Positions 24,611 to 35,614 of a DNA stretch of 64,000 nt are shown piece by piece. The first letter of the stretch is position 1; each line of letters opens with the position of its first letter. The stretch lies in the IMG/VR virus record IMGVR_UViG_3300026518_000006, positions 171,594-235,593 of that record; one strand, written 5' to 3'. The position numbers and the translations under genes were made by a program. Under the pieces are notes generated by a model. That model had not been told where the DNA came from, searched no databases, and worked only from the letters and a program-made list of their open reading frames with translations.

Positions 24611-25744
24611 ATGGCTTGTTCATTAGAGGGTGGGTGTGGTAGCTCATCAGAAAGTATTCATATAGATATCAATACTACTAGCATTTGTAATATTGCTTGT
24701 ACTTATTGTTCAGAGGGAAATGAGTGTGGTTTGAGTACTCTATATATGGGGAATACTGAGGTAAAAGTAGAAGACTTGATTAAAAAATTAGGCAAAGACC
24801 CCGCTAAACATAAGACTATAAATTTTTGGGGGGGAGAGCCTTTTGTAAATTTTGATTTCTGCAAAGCTATTATAGACGGTTTTAAAGATGACAAAACATT
24901 TAGTTTCTTTTTTTATACCAATGGGTTGTATATACCAAATTATATCGACCAATTAAAGCGATGGAATGAAGAATTCGGGAAAGAGTTAAACGCTGATGGA
25001 CAAAATAGATTGTATCTTCAAATAAGTTATGATGGGCGACACCTCACAAATACAGTGAGAGTGGATAAAGGCGGTCACGGCACTGCTGATAGAGTTGAAA
25101 AGGCATATAAATTACTAAAAGAAAACAATATAGGAACTTCATTAAAAGCAGTGATTAGCACCGATGGTTTTCCATATCTTTTTGAAAGCTTTAAAGATTT
25201 ATATGAGCTTCAAGGTTTTTATTCACCAACACCTGATTTATGGTCTGATAGAAGTGAAGAAGAGTTCAATACTGATTTAGAAATACTTGGAAAAGAGCTT
25301 GAGAAGATAGCAAAGTATATATACCAAAATGATTTGAGTCCTGAAGTATTTAGTTGGTTTGCTAAATCAAGAGCGATTTGTAGTACAGGTGCGGGTATGC
25401 TTAGTATAGACCTTGATGGTGGCATATACCCTTGTCACGCAGGTATGTATGGTGAAAGCGAAGAGCATAAAATAGGAGAGCTTGAAGATTGGGAACATAT
25501 TAGAGAAAATGTTATGGATGACTTTAAAAAAATTAATACCAATCTTCCATTGGAATGTCAAACTTGTGATGTAAATTATTGTATGAAGTGCCAAATATCA
25601 AACTACGCAAAATCTACAAAAGATACATACGAGGAAAGATTTACAGATTATCAAGCAAATTGGCAGGTTTGCAAAATATTTAAAATGAACGACAAATATA
25701 ATAAAACACTGAGATATGCAATGACACAAAAAGGATTGAGATGA
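24611..25744 (+). CDS. Radical SAM/SPASM enzyme 1
   Basis: CNIACTYC, FWGGEP, TNG, ISYDG; SPASM cysteines CSTG...YPCH...CQTC....CMKC. Confidence 0.93.
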   Translation: MACSLEGGCGSSSESIHIDINTTSICNIACTYCSEGNECGLSTLYMGNTEVKVEDLIKKLGKDPAKHKTINFWGGEPFVNFDFCKAIIDGFKDDKTFSFFFYTNGLYIPNYIDQLKRWNEEFGKELNADGQNRLYLQISYDGRHLTNTVRVDKGGHGTADRVEKAYKLLKENNIGTSLKAVISTDGFPYLFESFKDLYELQGFYSPTPDLWSDRSEEEFNTDLEILGKELEKIAKYIYQNDLSPEVFSWFAKSRAICSTGAGMLSIDLDGGIYPCHAGMYGESEEHKIGELEDWEHIRENVMDDFKKINTNLPLECQTCDVNYCMKCQISNYAKSTKDTYEERFTDYQANWQVCKIFKMNDKYNKTLRYAMTQKGLR

Positions 25745-26364
25745 GTGCCAAACTCACATCTCAAGAGCTCAAAGATAAAGCAAATAAAAACAATCCTGAT
25801 GTGCAAATCATAGGTAAATATATAAATTCCAAAACAAACATCTATGTTATTTGTAAATGTGGCAATACGACATCTGTTAGACCCAGTGAATTATATAAAT
25901 CTTGGCGATGTTTTGAGTGTGGTATAAAAGCAAGAAAATACATAAATGGAAATGGAGGATGGTCAACTAAAAGAAATAAAGAAGCTAAAAACAGAATAAT
26001 TCAAAAACACAAAGAATTATTATCCAAAAAATTGCCACATATTGAGTTGGTAGGAGATTATGAGGACAGTAAAACAAAGACAAATTATATCTGTTTTAAG
26101 GTTGGATTAACTCTTTATAAGTATAATGATGTTACGAAATGTATAAAAAATCGCTTTAGAAAAGAGAATAATAATATACTTCTGTTAGGATATATTATAT
26201 TCAAAAATGGAGCGGAAGGTTATGAGTTGGAGCAAAGAATCTTAAATTCTCATCAAAAATATAACTCGGATATTTTGCAATTTGGTGGTAATTCCGAACT
26301 GTTATCTGAGAATATTATTGCTCTCGATAAATACAAATTCATAAAAACAAAGGAAATTATATGA
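25741..26364 (+). mobile_element. Homing-endonuclease-like gene (zinc-ribbon repeats plus GIY-YIG/T5orf172-like C-terminus), apparently internally truncated
   Basis: YINSKT....CKCG...CFECG repeat; a second repeat runs straight into FKVGLT...RF...ELEQ...GNSEL and lacks the YLY segment seen in 34201-34911. Confidence 0.6.
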
Positions 26365-27660
26365 AAACAAACACAACAAACACAACAAACACACAAAAAT
26401 ATACTGAGCTTCAAGACAATAATATAAAAATGAAGTACAATATGAAAACAAACACAACAAACACAACAACCAAAATTAATACCAAAAAACCAACACAAAA
26501 AAGTAAAGGTAATGGATTTAAAACATTTACACTTGAAGTACAAACAACACAAAAATGCAATTTGGGCTGTCCTCGGCTTTGCCGATAAGTTAATTTTTTA
26601 GTATTTAGAGTAAATACCTTATTGCTATGTAGCAAATAGAGACCTTTTTCTTACACCTGAAGTATTTGATAAAAGTTTCGAAAGAATTATTGATTTAATG
26701 CAGAGAAGTGGCACTACCAATTTGAATATTAGTTTTTTTGGTGGCGAGCCTTTATTAAATTTTGAAGTTATCAAGCATATTACTAAAAGAGTTGAAGCAC
26801 TCCCTATTAGAACAGACTTAGTTTTAATTTCAAATATGACTATGATTACAGAAGAAATTTCAGACTTTTTGTTTGAGCATAATATTGGTGTGTCTTGGTC
26901 TTTCGATGGTATGGGGTCTAATGAAACAAGACCACTTTTGCCTATTTTTGAAAACAAGAATAAAGACGGAAAATTATACAATGGAATTTTAGACCTCTAT
27001 GAAGACAAAAAAGACCTTATTTTAAAGCACACCAACGGCTGTAAAATTATGATTTGGGCAGGAAATATGCACCAAATGAGCGAAAATTTAGACTTCTTTG
27101 TTGATTGGGGTTTAACAGGGCTTGATTACTCATTAGTAAGAGATGATGTGTGGACTAAAGATGATTTGATAGCATTTAGAGGACATCTAAGAGACTTAGC
27201 CGATAAGTATATTCAGTACACAAAAAAAGGTGTCCCTTTACATATAGGTTTTTTTGATTTAGCTATTGGTGATAATGTTATTAACTTTACATTTGGCAAA
27301 AGAGATTTCGGGTGTTTTGCAGGTGTAAATGGTGCAAATATGACACCAACAGGAGAGTTCTACCCTTGTGCTAGATTTGCTACAAAATCACTTATGAAAA
27401 TTGATGATGAGTATGATTTTAATTATTGGGCTGAACAATTTAGACCTGCCAATTATGATAAATGCAAGACTTGTGATATTCAACAAGTTTGTAACGCAGG
27501 ATGTACCTTTAGTCAAGTTAGAAATGACAATAAACCTGTGGATAGTGTTTGTGAGTTGTATCATATGATACAAGAAGAAACGATTAGAATAGTACACGAA
27601 TTAAAAGACAACGAGTTGTTTCAAGAACAGGTTATGTCATTATTTAACAATATGGGGTGA
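26361..27660 (+). CDS. Radical SAM/SPASM enzyme 2, interrupted by a 46-nt coding gap (join 26361..26573, 26620..27660; about 417 aa)
   Basis: CNLGCP ends at 26573 and YCYVANRD resumes at 26620, in frame with the 26698..27660 ORF (FFGGEP, SFDG, CFAG...YPCARF, CKTC....CNAGC); joining restores CNLGCPYC. Confidence 0.88.
26574..26619 (+). other. Candidate programmed translational bypass (hop) element
   Basis: CCT take-off (26571-73) and CCT landing (26617-19); hairpin TCGGC-TTT-GCCGA then TAA; hairpin GTATTTA-GAG-TAAATAC; GAG 6 nt before the landing codon. Confidence 0.7.
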
Positions 27661-29270: not shown

Positions 29271-29783
29271 ATGAGTGATTGGCTAAAAAATCCATACGGA
29301 ACCCCAGGAGGAGACGAAAAAACTTATTCTTCTGAAGAATTAGCTCAAATGGGGGTAAATATAGGTGAGTTAATCACCAATGAAAAATTCAATTATTTAT
29401 CAGGGAAAGTTAAAAACGAATCTGCAAGAAGAGGTGTGGGGGTACCTGATTATGAGCGAAATGACGGTGAACTTATCACCGCTGTGGATTACAATGTGAT
29501 AATTGACAGAATTAATAATGTGTTGGATATTCCGAGAAACCCTGATGGAGCAGATTTACCACATTTGTCAAATGTTGCTATTGGAGATTTAATAACCGCT
29601 TTAATTCACAATAATATAAAAAACAAGCTTGTTGATGCAGGAAATCAATGTATGTGTAACTGTAATTACTGTGCTTGTAACTGTAATCAGTGCATCTGTA
29701 ACTGTAATCACGCTTGTGTGTGTAACTGTAATTATTCTGATGAACGACTTAAAACAAATATCGTTTATATAGGTGTTTTTTAA
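29271..29783 (+). CDS. Cys-rich protein ending in the first motif of a Peptidase_S74 chaperone domain; candidate radical SAM substrate
   Basis: Three G(E/D)LIT....N repeats, then CMCNCNYCACNCNQCICNCNHACVCNCNY (12 Cys) and SDERLKTNI. Confidence 0.75.
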   Translation: MSDWLKNPYGTPGGDEKTYSSEELAQMGVNIGELITNEKFNYLSGKVKNESARRGVGVPDYERNDGELITAVDYNVIIDRINNVLDIPRNPDGADLPHLSNVAIGDLITALIHNNIKNKLVDAGNQCMCNCNYCACNCNQCICNCNHACVCNCNYSDERLKTNIVYIGVF

Positions 29784-34200: not shown

Positions 34201-34911
34201 ATGAGAATTTTATCAAGAGAAGAAATCATAAAAGTTTGCGAAGAAAAGCACGGAAAGAAATACAACTACAGTCTTGTCAAGGATAGTTTAGGTTCAGACT
34301 CAATCCCTATTATTTGTGATAAACACGGTATTTTTAAACTATCTGTAAATTCCCACAAAAGAGGCGCAAGATGTCCCGTTTGTCATCCTCCTAAACTTTC
34401 TAATGAGGAAGTGATAGAGCAATTCAAAAAAGCCAATAATAACCAATACATATATGACATCACTAATTATACAAGCAATCAGACAAAAGTAGAAGTAATA
34501 TGTAAAAAACACGGAGTTTTTACGACATCCCCTGATAACCACAAAAGAGGCAACGGATGTCCTGATTGTGCGATTGATAAGATATATAAAAACAAACCTA
34601 CTTATCTTTACCATCTTAGTATTAATAATAATGGGAAGACGCAATATAAATTGGGGGTGTGTTTGAAGCGTGATTTTGATACAGTTGAAGAGGCTGTTAA
34701 TTACAGATATAGTTATGAAAAGAAGCATAATGTTGAATTTCATATACTTGATTATAAATTATATGATGATGGGGTACAGGCATATAAACTCGAACAGGCT
34801 GTCATAAATGAATTGAAAGATAAACATATACCTAAAAATGAAAGTATTATGTTTAGCGGATATACTGAAATATTTAATGAGGATTTTATATCGGATTTCA
34901 ATTTATTTTAA
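34201..34911 (+). mobile_element. Homing-endonuclease-like gene (two C.KHG.F...H..G..CP.C zinc ribbons plus GIY-YIG-like nuclease)
   Basis: ICDKHGIF...HKRGARCPVC and ICKKHGVF...HKRGNGCPDC; TYLY...YKLG...RY...LEQ...GYTEIF. Confidence 0.7.
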
Positions 34912-35032: not shown

Positions 35033-35614
35033 ATGAAGCATATTATCGCTTTTTTCGGAATTATGGCAGTTATGGTATCAACAGCAGTTGCAGGTGGGGA
35101 CATCGCACCAGTAGAGCCTGTAGTAGAGCAACCCAAGAACTTTTATGTAGGTGGCGCATTAACAGCTTCGCAAGTATATGACCAAGGTGACTCTCATTGG
35201 TTTAACGACACTGCATCAGCAGAAACAGGATATGGTCTTGGTGTTCAAGCAGGTTATGTATTCTTTAGAACAGGTGATTTTTCTTCGGCTGTAGAGGTTA
35301 GAGCTAACAGAACATTTTGGTCTTTTGCAGATGATGTTGATGGTGAAGTAACCTCTTACGGTGCTTTTGTTAAACCTGAGTATAGCTTTGGTGATTATGG
35401 TGTTTATGGTCTTGTTGGTTATGGTCAAACAAGACTTACAGGTACAGGATTCAAACAAACAGAAAATGGTTTTGCATATGGCGGTGGTGTAGAATATGCA
35501 CTTACTGAGTCATTTGCTGTATTTGTTGATTATGTGGTTAATCCTGAAATCAAAGAAACTCCGAAAGATATCGAAAATGACACTATTTCAATCGGTGTAA
35601 ACTACAAGTTCTAA
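35033..35614 (+). CDS. Outer-membrane beta-barrel protein (OMP_b-brl/porin family)
   Basis: Signal peptide, GGDIAPVEP, alternating beta strands (FYVG, GVQAGY, YGLVGYG, FAYGGGVEY), terminal GVNYKF. Confidence 0.88.
   Translation: MKHIIAFFGIMAVMVSTAVAGGDIAPVEPVVEQPKNFYVGGALTASQVYDQGDSHWFNDTASAETGYGLGVQAGYVFFRTGDFSSAVEVRANRTFWSFADDVDGEVTSYGAFVKPEYSFGDYGVYGLVGYGQTRLTGTGFKQTENGFAYGGGVEYALTESFAVFVDYVVNPEIKETPKDIENDTISIGVNYKF

Follow-up and report, generated by a model that had tools for sequence, protein, structure and literature searches.

A probable decaying mobA/gene 60-type cassette in a radical SAM gene of a vent jumbo phage

In the 64,000-nucleotide stretch of DNA analysed here (the window), the codons for the CxxxCxxC cluster motif of a radical SAM gene, rSAM-B, are split by a short non-coding gap, and a gene resembling a homing endonuclease lies directly upstream. 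The locus raises the question of how a complete rSAM-B enzyme could be made, and whether the gap and the endonuclease gene belong together as gene 60 and mobA of phage T4 do. The window comes from a vent jumbo phage with a 235-kb genome. The features of the locus are as follows.

24611..25744, + strand: rSAM-A, a radical SAM/SPASM gene, the upstream neighbour (Pfam Radical_SAM, E = 5e-11; phrog_1802)
25741..26364, + strand: truncated free-standing endonuclease gene, 207 aa, retaining zinc ribbon 1, the first part of ribbon 2 and the C-terminal portion of a domain of the T5orf172/GIY-YIG type
26084..26089, + strand: deletion junction relative to a 326-aa allele, with short A/T microhomology
26361..26516, + strand: N-terminal extension of rSAM-B, basic, missing from all uninterrupted relatives
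26517..26573, + strand: conserved N-terminal core of rSAM-B up to Cys1-x3-Cys2-Pro, with the take-off codon CCT at 26571-26573
26574..26619, + strand: non-coding gap of 46 nt that splits the CxxxCxxC codons of rSAM-B
26620..27660, + strand: rSAM-B 3′ of the gap, from the third cluster Cys (YCYVAN...), frame intact and under purifying selection
34201..34911, + strand: intact paralogous endonuclease gene, 236 aa, with DUF4379 zinc ribbons and a T5orf172-like domain

The stop codon of rSAM-A overlaps the ATG of the endonuclease ORF (ATGA, 25741-44), the stop codon of which overlaps the first ATG of rSAM-B (ATGA, 26361-64), and the distance from the end of the endonuclease ORF (26364) to the first base of the gap (26574) is 210 nt. 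The 207-aa ORF matched the phage endonuclease families phrog_559 (E = 1.7e-11) and phrog_681 (E = 2.9e-9). Two descriptions in an earlier note on this DNA held: that of a zinc-ribbon/GIY-YIG-like ORF overlapping the rSAM start about 210 nt from the gap, and that of a 46-nt insert in the CxxxCxxC codons. In the endonuclease-free relatives L003, L005, L006, and L010, rSAM-A adjoins rSAM-B directly or via an ORF of 70-80 aa. The C-terminal part of rSAM-B matched phrog_1802 (E = 5e-32) and Pfam Radical_SAM at 26.9 bits, slightly below the cutoff. The phage encodes several further rSAM paralogues.

The cluster motif of rSAM-B lies in one polypeptide only when the gap is skipped. The landing codon CCT (26617-19) matches the take-off codon CCT (26571-73), and joining the two CCU codons restores CNLGCP/YCYVAN (the slash marks the junction), which is invariant in >100 homologues. 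Stop codons close all three frames inside the gap, including an in-frame TAA at 26586-88. The first stop in the take-off frame (26586) comes before the last one in the landing frame (26611), so that a single frameshift would not carry a ribosome across the gap. The codon after take-off, CGG (26574-76), is used less often than any other sense codon in the phage (34 times in 52,181 codons, 0.65 per 1000), and the phage encodes no tRNA matching it; the first in-frame stop sits four codons past take-off, not immediately adjacent. A 5-bp take-off hairpin (26573-26585) had a folding energy of -6.4 kcal/mol (z = -2.6), far weaker than that of T4 (-14.7 kcal/mol). After an AU-rich spacer, GAG (26608-10) precedes the landing CCU by 6 nt, the same spacing as in T4 (GAG + 6 nt + GGA). 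Folding of the whole region was no better than that of shuffled sequences (z of about -0.1 to -1.1), and the local hairpins alone stood out. No Rfam match was found in and around the gap, no terminator, and no group I intron in the window phage genome. The gap insert is single-copy, with no second copy in the 235-kb genome. A 14/16 match in rSAM-B at 27193 was considered as a gap copy and rejected as chance level, as 2% of random windows equal it.

The 46-nt gap was identical in two other assemblies (L011 and L012). In a 98% identical strain, found on a contig from another study's run, the gap was 47 nt with one extra T, so that the frame offset is not fixed. Because the gap recurs in assemblies that were made independently, in two or more further studies, it is not an assembly artefact. 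Between the window and the 98% identical gap-bearing strain, the frame 3′ of the gap differed by 11 synonymous and 2 non-synonymous changes. The downstream frame is therefore under purifying selection, which supports bypassing indirectly; bypassing itself is inferred, without RNA or proteome data, the locus being present in no RNA run. The boundaries of the element could not be resolved from the closest endonuclease-free relative, which is 79% identical, with equal third-position identity before and after the gap.

The upstream endonuclease gene has decayed. A full-length allele of 326 aa (P0122) was found in L011 and L012, the DNA of which is 99.2% and 99.9% identical to the window. Across strains of 98-99.9% identity, a 326-aa version persists together with the gap. 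Relative to this allele, the window copy carries a 357-bp in-frame deletion that removed zinc ribbons 2-3 and the YLY-equivalent strand, so that 119 residues, including the first catalytic strand, are missing. The earlier claim that the ORF had lost the YLY segment kept by its relative at 34201 (24% identity to the 207-aa ORF, E = 6e-9) was proven by this allele. P0122, the 34201 paralogue, and every homologue have the first strand with the conserved Tyr, equivalent to 'GIY', which is deleted in the window ORF. The nuclease-domain alignment shows a conserved Tyr, Gly, and Arg together with two conserved Glu residues; columns G37, E79, and E101 do not vary, R53 is conserved at ≥90%, and all four are retained in the window ORF. 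Judged from sequence alone, the window endonuclease is most likely dead, as is mobA in laboratory T4.

The intact endonuclease of this locus consists of three CapR/DUF4379-type zinc ribbons and a T5orf172/GIY-YIG-type nuclease domain. The homologues P0138 and P0274 passed the Pfam cutoff for T5orf172, and P0274 passed that for MUG113 too; P0218 and P0249 matched MUG113 only below the cutoff, and P0122 alone reached no Pfam nuclease family cutoff. The AF2 model of the nuclease had a pLDDT of 83, and its best structural matches by VIA-align were GIY-YIG nucleases with modest Z scores (HIGLE, 5.5; Slx1, 5.0; UvrC-N, 3.9; I-TevI, 3.8). A Foldseek search of the nuclease against the PDB gave no significant match. 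Close relatives of the endonuclease were not found in IMG/VR, and among 1.8 billion representatives there were none with >42% identity besides the alleles P0121 and P0122. The family is likely a zinc-ribbon plus T5orf172/GIY-YIG-type nuclease, a type of enzyme that serves as free-standing homing endonucleases. Cleavage and gene conversion are inferred from comparative signs: the gene is present in some relatives and absent from others, its distribution is scattered, and every carrier has a split target site.

rSAM-B also carries an N-terminal leader, the start of which is repeated by an 81-nt tandem duplication (33-nt copies at 26359-26391 and 26440-26472). Counting from the second Met (26443), 44 aa lead up to the take-off Pro, and AAT (26511-13) stands in place of the ancestral rSAM-B ATG. 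BLASTP detected no similarity between this leader and that of T4 gp60.

Two further lineages with an interrupted rSAM-B were identified. In L075/L076, the host protein is 58% identical to that of the window, and a 44-nt gap lies at the same site. The take-off codon of L075 is CCA and the landing codon CCU, a pair that still counts as matched under the criterion of one tRNA reading both, with UGA immediately after take-off, and its take-off hairpin (CC-UUCG-GG, 5 bp, -6.6 kcal/mol) occupies the same place as in the window with a different sequence. The last 26 nt of the L075 gap are identical to those of the window gap, even though identity at third-codon positions of the flanking gene is as low as 44%. 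The allele has a leader of 44 aa, and a homologous endonuclease that has decayed lies upstream; this remnant is 66% identical over its first 58 aa to the endonuclease of the third lineage, L079, versus 28% to P0122. Between the two hop lineages, both the endonuclease and the leader have diverged in sequence despite the partly identical gap, and it is possible that endonuclease and gap do not always travel as a single unit. In L079, the Cys2 codon is interrupted by a group I intron (86.7 bits against Rfam), 5 nt from the gap site, and an intact homologous endonuclease of 317 aa lies upstream of the intron-bearing rSAM-B. The 44-aa leader is confined to the hop alleles (window and L075 lineages) and is absent from L079. 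Gap lengths across strains were 44, 46, and 47 nt.

Co-occurrence of endonuclease and insert across related genomes, which the earlier note had proposed to examine, was scored over 55 loci. The endonuclease was present in all three interrupted lineages and in none of the 48 uninterrupted loci, without exception. This count leaves out the endonuclease status of the sister proteins P0007 and P0062, only three interrupted lineages are known, and L081 begins exactly at the landing codon, so that interruption could not be judged there. In the tree of the host gene, the three interrupted lineages were scattered, a pattern consistent with horizontal spread. Pattern scans for further gapped alleles found none in IMG/VR, none in GTDB genomes, and only the window's contig in JGI metagenomes; the first scan pattern was too narrow, and L075 would have escaped it. 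Six truncated proteins considered as gap carriers (P0004, P0039, P0078, P0023, P0115, and P0075) proved to be uninterrupted, their truncation being a start artefact of the gene caller, and a long tblastn span in L059 considered as an insert consisted of two adjacent rSAM paralogues. The earlier inference that the insert disrupts an endonuclease target and spread by homing is supported by these comparisons, with cleavage, protection, and bypassing remaining inferred.

We propose that 25741-26619 is likely a decaying mobA/gene 60-type mobile cassette in a radical SAM gene; no biochemical data are available, and its cleavage, protection, and bypassing steps are inferred. The cassette would comprise the endonuclease gene between rSAM-A and rSAM-B, the N-terminal leader of rSAM-B, and the 46-nt gap in the CxxxCxxC codons. 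In mixed infections, an intact endonuclease, such as the 326-aa allele of the sister strains, would cut an uninterrupted rSAM-B within or close to the strongly conserved DNA that encodes CxxxCxxC, and repair of the break off the carrier genome would copy the cassette in. The gap, or in L079 the group I intron 5 nt away, would disrupt the recognition site and protect the carrier. The occurrence of two hop gaps and one group I intron within the same few base pairs is a known signature of an insert-protected homing-endonuclease target. The rSAM-B enzyme would still be produced by ribosomes that leave CCU 26571-73 and resume at CCU 26617-19; take-off may be aided by the starved A-site codon CGG, the hairpin, and the 44-aa nascent leader in the exit tunnel, and landing may be guided by GAG as a mini-Shine-Dalgarno sequence 6 nt upstream of CCU.

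One alternative accepts a genuine hop and regards the endonuclease as an unrelated neighbour that homed into the space between rSAM-A and rSAM-B via a cut elsewhere, the gap having arisen or spread independently without a protective role. It is favoured by the divergence of endonuclease and leader between hop lineages that share the 3′ half of the gap, by the closer relation of the L075 remnant to the intron-linked gene of L079 than to P0122, and by the reported independence of bypass cassettes from endonuclease type (10.1101/2022.08.31.505936). We nevertheless consider it unlikely, given the perfect co-occurrence and the presence of two kinds of insert within 5 bp solely beside this zinc-ribbon/T5orf172 endonuclease family.

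Another possibility is that rSAM-B is a pseudogene or split gene broken by the 46-nt insert, such that no full-length enzyme is made, or that a 75-aa N-terminal fragment and a C-terminal fragment initiated separately at ATG 26698 assemble. Gene callers do give products of 75 aa and 320 aa, the other rSAM paralogues of the phage are consistent with this explanation, and T4 topoisomerase and Aeh1 NrdA function as split proteins. However, the third cluster Cys and 25 conserved codons (26620-26697) precede the first ATG in an open, family-like frame, and the downstream changes are mostly synonymous. Moreover, the ancestral start has been replaced, a leader of constant length (44 aa) is present in both hop lineages and not in the intron lineage, and the 26 nt ahead of landing are identical across lineages with saturated synonymous sites; this explanation is very unlikely. 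Removal of the gap at the RNA level, by a tiny intron or a processing site, draws support from the L079 intron at nearly the same site, but 46 nt is far below the size of any self-splicing intron, and the searches for an Rfam match in or around the gap, for a terminator, and for a group I intron in the genome were negative. Together with an assembly artefact, against which the recurrence in independent assemblies speaks, it is all but excluded.

Research on programmed bypassing of 50 nt goes back about 35 years, and the most recent survey still found it in topoisomerase genes of T4-like phages only and called it unique (10.1101/2022.08.31.505936). If the cassette reading is true, this would be the first gene-60-style cassette seen outside phage topoisomerase genes, and the trick would be transferable, as this instance departs from the known ones in its host gene, its take-off codon (Pro), and its endonuclease partner. 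The two diverged natural variants would help to sort essential signals (hairpin, starved codon, mini-Shine-Dalgarno sequence, leader length) from accidents of T4. The L079 intron 5 nt away makes the long-standing idea that a gap protects against the neighbouring endonuclease directly testable, with three natural allele types and one enzyme. A bolder reading, for and against which we see the case as evenly balanced, is that the gene-60 cassette is not bound to topoisomerase and is a portable immunity module for any conserved target, partnered by various homing endonucleases (HNH, VSR, GIY-YIG, and here zinc-ribbon/T5orf172). In this bolder reading, hop-protected, intron-protected, and unprotected alleles of the radical SAM target site exist side by side in nature, the protection being inferred.

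The closest known system is the T4 mobA/gene 60 mobile cassette (Bonocora et al. 2011, as summarised in 10.1101/2022.08.31.505936), and the parallel drawn in the earlier note held and extends to decay of the endonuclease with the gap kept, as reported for mobA (10.1101/2022.08.31.505936). In both cassettes, the endonuclease gene sits immediately upstream, its reading frame overlapping the next, and the interrupted gene has gained an N-terminal leader (46 aa in T4 and 44 aa here). Matched codons flank a gap of roughly 45-50 nt that has a hairpin at take-off and is AU-rich towards its 3′ end, with GAG placed exactly 6 nt ahead of landing, and the cassettes are similar in total size (about 1.2 kb here with an intact endonuclease). 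They differ in that the host is a radical SAM gene and not topoisomerase II, and rSAM-B lacks the division into two proteins, with its C-terminal extension; the Topo2L homologue of the phage itself is unsplit. MobA is an HNH endonuclease, whereas that of the window is of the zinc-ribbon plus T5orf172/GIY-YIG type. The matched codons are GGA/GGA in T4 and CCU/CCU here, T4 has a stop after take-off where the window has the rare CGG, the window hairpin is weaker, and the leaders lack detectable homology.

The mitochondrial bypass elements ('byps') of Magnusiomyces, reportedly described by Lang et al. [quoted passage not shown] In collaborative (trans) homing, as known for F-CphI with the cyanophage psbA intron and T4 mobE with the nrdB intron (PMC6083498, PMC2790892, PMC2988022), the arrangement is exactly that of L079, namely a free-standing endonuclease beside a gene whose target site contains a group I intron without an ORF; in the window and L075, the putative protecting insert is a translational gap and not an intron, and the endonuclease family differs. 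In the metagenomic Topo2L bypass cassettes of clades 9-11, MobA is replaced by GIY-YIG or VSR endonucleases (10.1101/2022.08.31.505936). These cassettes still reside in Topo2L, use Gly or Asp codons for take-off, and have another middle spacer, and they share with the present locus an exchangeable endonuclease type. The clade-11 cassette has a 14-nt hairpin with UGA identical to that of L075, and its landing codon is closely preceded by AGAGUAAAU, a feature common to L075 and the window.

The window is the final 64 kb of a 235.6-kb IMG/VR virus record (approximately 31% G+C, 86% complete), and the public source runs containing its sequence are hydrothermal-vent metagenomes. Starting near 24.6 kb, the plus strand holds a row of radical SAM/SPASM genes.

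Features of the interrupted gene and its neighbors (window positions)
24611..25744, plus strand: rSAM-A, a radical SAM/SPASM gene
25741..26364, plus strand: endonuclease ORF, 207 aa, assigned by PHROG families and a paralogue match
26361..27660, plus strand: rSAM-B, an interrupted radical SAM gene, frame restored by a 46-nt skip
26574..26619, plus strand: gap, 46 nt, with CCT codons at take-off and end
34201..34911, plus strand: endonuclease paralogue, 24% identical to the ORF at 25741..26364 (E 6e-9)

The earlier note had placed a 46-nt insert in the CxxxCxxC codons of rSAM-B, and this held. rSAM-B reads CNLGCP and then meets an in-frame stop at 26586, and a second frame, opening at 26614, reads (I)P-YCYVAN and continues to 27660. 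Skipping 26574..26619, from the CCT at 26571-73 to the CCT at the gap end, restores CNLGCP/YCYVAN and yields a protein that aligns to its relatives without gaps; more than 100 homologues have CNLGCPYCYVAN or a near variant at the junction. Stops close all three frames within the gap, and a single frameshift cannot cross it because the last stop of the landing frame lies 3′ of the first stop of the take-off frame. No terminator, Rfam family, or intron was found in or near the gap, and no evidence points to an RNA-level explanation. Take-off is followed by CGG, the rarest sense codon of the phage (0.65 per 1000 in 178 long ORFs), and no tRNA for CGG is among the 15 tRNAs of the phage, which are encoded in two clusters (41–48 kb and 95–98 kb).

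A strain about 98% identical to the window, represented by a 21.9-kb contig from another study's run, has the long endonuclease allele described below and a gap of 47 nt (one extra T), so that the frame offset varies. In the differences between the two listed by the tool, synonymous and non-synonymous changes numbered 11 and 2 in rSAM-B 3′ of the gap, 2 and 0 in rSAM-B 5′ of the gap, and 17 and 3 in rSAM-A, respectively. The post-gap counts indicate that this frame is maintained like a normal gene and support continued selection on rSAM-B.

The endonuclease ORF overlaps the rSAM-B start as the earlier note had described: it begins on the ATGA ending rSAM-A and ends on the ATGA containing the first rSAM-B ATG. 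Among phage endonuclease families, it matches phrog_559 and phrog_681. A protein search retrieved a 326-aa long allele, P0122, 99% identical to the window ORF over residues 1–118 and again over the final 89 residues. Two loci, L011 (ENA) and L012 (Logan), encode P0122; outside 357 additional bp at window 26084–26089, their DNA matches the window at 99.2% and 99.9% identity, respectively, and both have the identical 46-nt gap. P0122 comprises three CapR/DUF723/DUF4379-type zinc ribbons followed by a domain of about 110 aa at the C terminus. The window ORF is a deletion derivative of this allele without zinc ribbons 2 and 3 and without strand 1, the "YLY" segment whose apparent loss relative to the 34201 paralogue the earlier note had correctly pointed out. 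Because these parts are missing, the window copy is inferred to be inactive, in the absence of activity data.

Among homologues of the P0122 C-terminal domain, P0138 and P0274 reached the Pfam cutoff for T5orf172, and P0274 also passed that for MUG113, with P0218 and P0249 matching just below. T5orf172 and MUG113 are members of the GIY-YIG clan. In the domain alignment, the strand 1 Tyr, the strand 2 Gly, and two Glu were invariant, and at least 90% of the sequences shared a conserved Arg. Foldseek returned no match for an AlphaFold model of this domain (pLDDT 83); in an exhaustive structural comparison the best-scoring structures were GIY-YIG nucleases, although the scores were modest (HIGLE, Z 5.5; Slx1, 5.0 and 4.7; UvrC N-domain, 3.9; I-TevI, 3.8).

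The phage family of rSAM-B is large, with 235 matches at E below 1e-20. Its nearest uninterrupted relatives (L005–L010; 79%, 73%, and 72% identical) have no endonuclease, and only a 70–80 aa ORF separates rSAM-A and rSAM-B. This ORF, of unknown function, occupies the endonuclease's place at L005 989..1201, L006 1302..1523, and L010 2759..3001; in L003, a more distant relative, nothing lies between the two genes. Shortened gene calls in the family were considered as interruptions: many proved to be start-codon artefacts, and two (L075/L076 and L079) were real. Public calls (e.g., P0004, P0039, P0075, P0078, and P0115) often begin some 30 codons downstream, at a conserved Met inside the gene, and are no evidence of interruption since the full ORF with its CxxxCxxC motif is open upstream.

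Fifty-five fetched loci with an rSAM-B orthologue were compared, five of them interrupted (L011, L012, L075, L076, and L079). An endonuclease of the P0122 family was present in L011, L012, L075, and L079 and nowhere else, including 0/48 uninterrupted loci within the fetched flanks. The co-occurrence check proposed in the earlier note thus gave perfect co-occurrence in the fetched loci, except that L076 was too short to reveal an endonuclease and L081 was left unjudged. The latter is a JGI contig from a related phage, and its sequence starts precisely at the landing codon (TCC TTA TTG...), which may be an assembly break at a gapped/ungapped polymorphism. In the host-protein tree, the three interrupted lineages were separate, each sister to uninterrupted proteins (P0002–P0004, P0007, and P0062), and three changes were needed for interruption. 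Counted by lineage, leaving out the flanks of P0007 and P0062, the endonuclease occurred in 3/3 interrupted versus 0/~35 uninterrupted lineages (Fisher ~1e-4 by hand arithmetic), although lineages are few.

The second hop lineage, L075/L076 (two ENA assemblies), encodes a host protein 58% identical to that of the window and has a 44-nt gap at the same site. Directly after its take-off CCA comes UGA, within the hairpin UGACC-UUCG-GGUCA. Over the final 26 nt of the gap, landing codon CCU included, it does not differ from the window, and 25 of the 30 coding nucleotides immediately 3′ of landing are identical, whereas third-codon positions over the whole gene are only 44% identical. A 130-aa ORF upstream in L075, overlapping the leader start, is an internal-deletion remnant of an L079-like endonuclease.

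An N-terminal extension is found on hop alleles only and in no uninterrupted relative. In the window, translation must begin upstream because the ancestral ATG is now AAT, and the leader, counted from its second Met (26443) up to the take-off Pro, is 44 aa long, as in L075/L076. Its start is tandemly duplicated in frame (33-nt copies at 26359–26391 and 26440–26472, 97% identical, 81 nt apart), giving candidate ATGs at 26361, 26431, and 26443, of which 26361 alone is served by a clear AAGGA ribosome-binding site; in the 98%-identical strain, the first copy has lost 9 nt without a change of frame.

In the third lineage, L079 (Logan), a 274-nt group I intron (RF00028, 86.7 bits, E 1e-21) splits the codon for Cys2 at a point 5 nt 5′ of the hop site, and the motif is restored when splicing follows the U that ends the exon and the G that ends the intron. 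The leader is absent from this allele. Directly 5′ of the gene is an intact 317-aa P0122 homologue of the same architecture (28% full-length identity, E 9e-22). The arrangement matches published collaborative homing (PMC2790892, PMC6083498, PMC2988022), which strengthens the reading of the CxxxCxxC site as the endonuclease target.

The claim that the insert disrupts an endonuclease target and spread by homing is supported by this comparative evidence, without biochemical proof. We infer that the endonuclease would cut uninterrupted CxxxCxxC-coding DNA, that the gap or intron would protect carriers, that the cassette may have spread by homing, and that ribosomes would bypass the gap. An uninterrupted allele of a related phage occurs on a contig in the same vent study as the window's strain (run X4, joint 26573>26656), which places carrier and potential recipient phages in one habitat. 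A strict single-unit cassette fits less well: the endonuclease and leader have diverged between the hop lineages, yet the 3′ half of the gap is identical, and the L075 remnant is closer to the intron-linked L079 enzyme than to the window's. This would imply either very strong constraint on this half or movement of the gap separately from the endonuclease.

Just 3′ of the rSAM genes, 29271..29783 encodes a 170-aa protein with a run of CNCNYC-like cysteine repeats, kept in relatives (L004 5243..5668 is its counterpart), and a C-terminal SDERLKTN motif of the kind preceding Peptidase_S74 chaperone domains in tail fibres; the following ORF has a weak Peptidase_S74 match in L011. The adjoining of a tail-fibre-like protein to at least three rSAM/SPASM enzymes raises the possibility, from sequence alone, that a virion protein is cross-linked by radical SAM enzymes. 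A 193-aa protein at 35033..35614, with a signal peptide, resembles Gram-negative outer-membrane beta-barrels (alternating pattern, C-terminal YKF), which suggests a diderm host.

The fetched T4 gene 60 sequence shares with the window gap matched take-off/landing codons, a compact G+C-rich take-off hairpin (window 26573–26585, −6.4 kcal/mol, z −2.6; T4, −14.7), an AU-rich 3′ part, and GAG exactly 6 nt 5′ of the landing codon. T4 differs in having a stop after take-off where the window has CGG; 'hungry' codons stand in for the stop in some cassettes (Manning and Atkins preprint, 10.1101/2022.08.31.505936). The T4 leader is 46 aa, compared with 44 aa, and the rSAM-B extension shows no sequence similarity to it. 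T4 mobA is annotated as defective in the T4 record, a parallel to the inferred inactivity of the window's copy, and the same preprint reports that MobA is frequently pseudogenised or lost with the gap kept, and replaced by GIY-YIG or VSR endonucleases in some metagenomic clades. According to the preprint, every known bypass cassette lies in a myovirus Topo2L gene, and the cassette "remains unique". In the present phage, the Topo2L homologue (G000:C1:78335-79567, outside the window; 608 aa, 31% identical to the T4 protein) is unsplit and lacks a MobA-type insertion. No description of bypassing in a radical SAM gene was found in the literature searched. Topo2L clade 11 (supplementary alignment of the preprint) has the 14-nt L075 hairpin after its take-off GGT, and AGAGUAAAU one base before its landing GGC, as L075 and the window have one base before CCU. 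Since two choices, the UGA stop and the CC-UUCG-GG tip, largely account for the hairpin identity, common descent with the clade 11 cassette is likely but unproven, and convergence remains possible. Pending biochemical proof, the locus would represent a gene-60-style cassette that pairs an endonuclease with a bypass gap, and for which both the interrupted gene and the endonuclease family are new.
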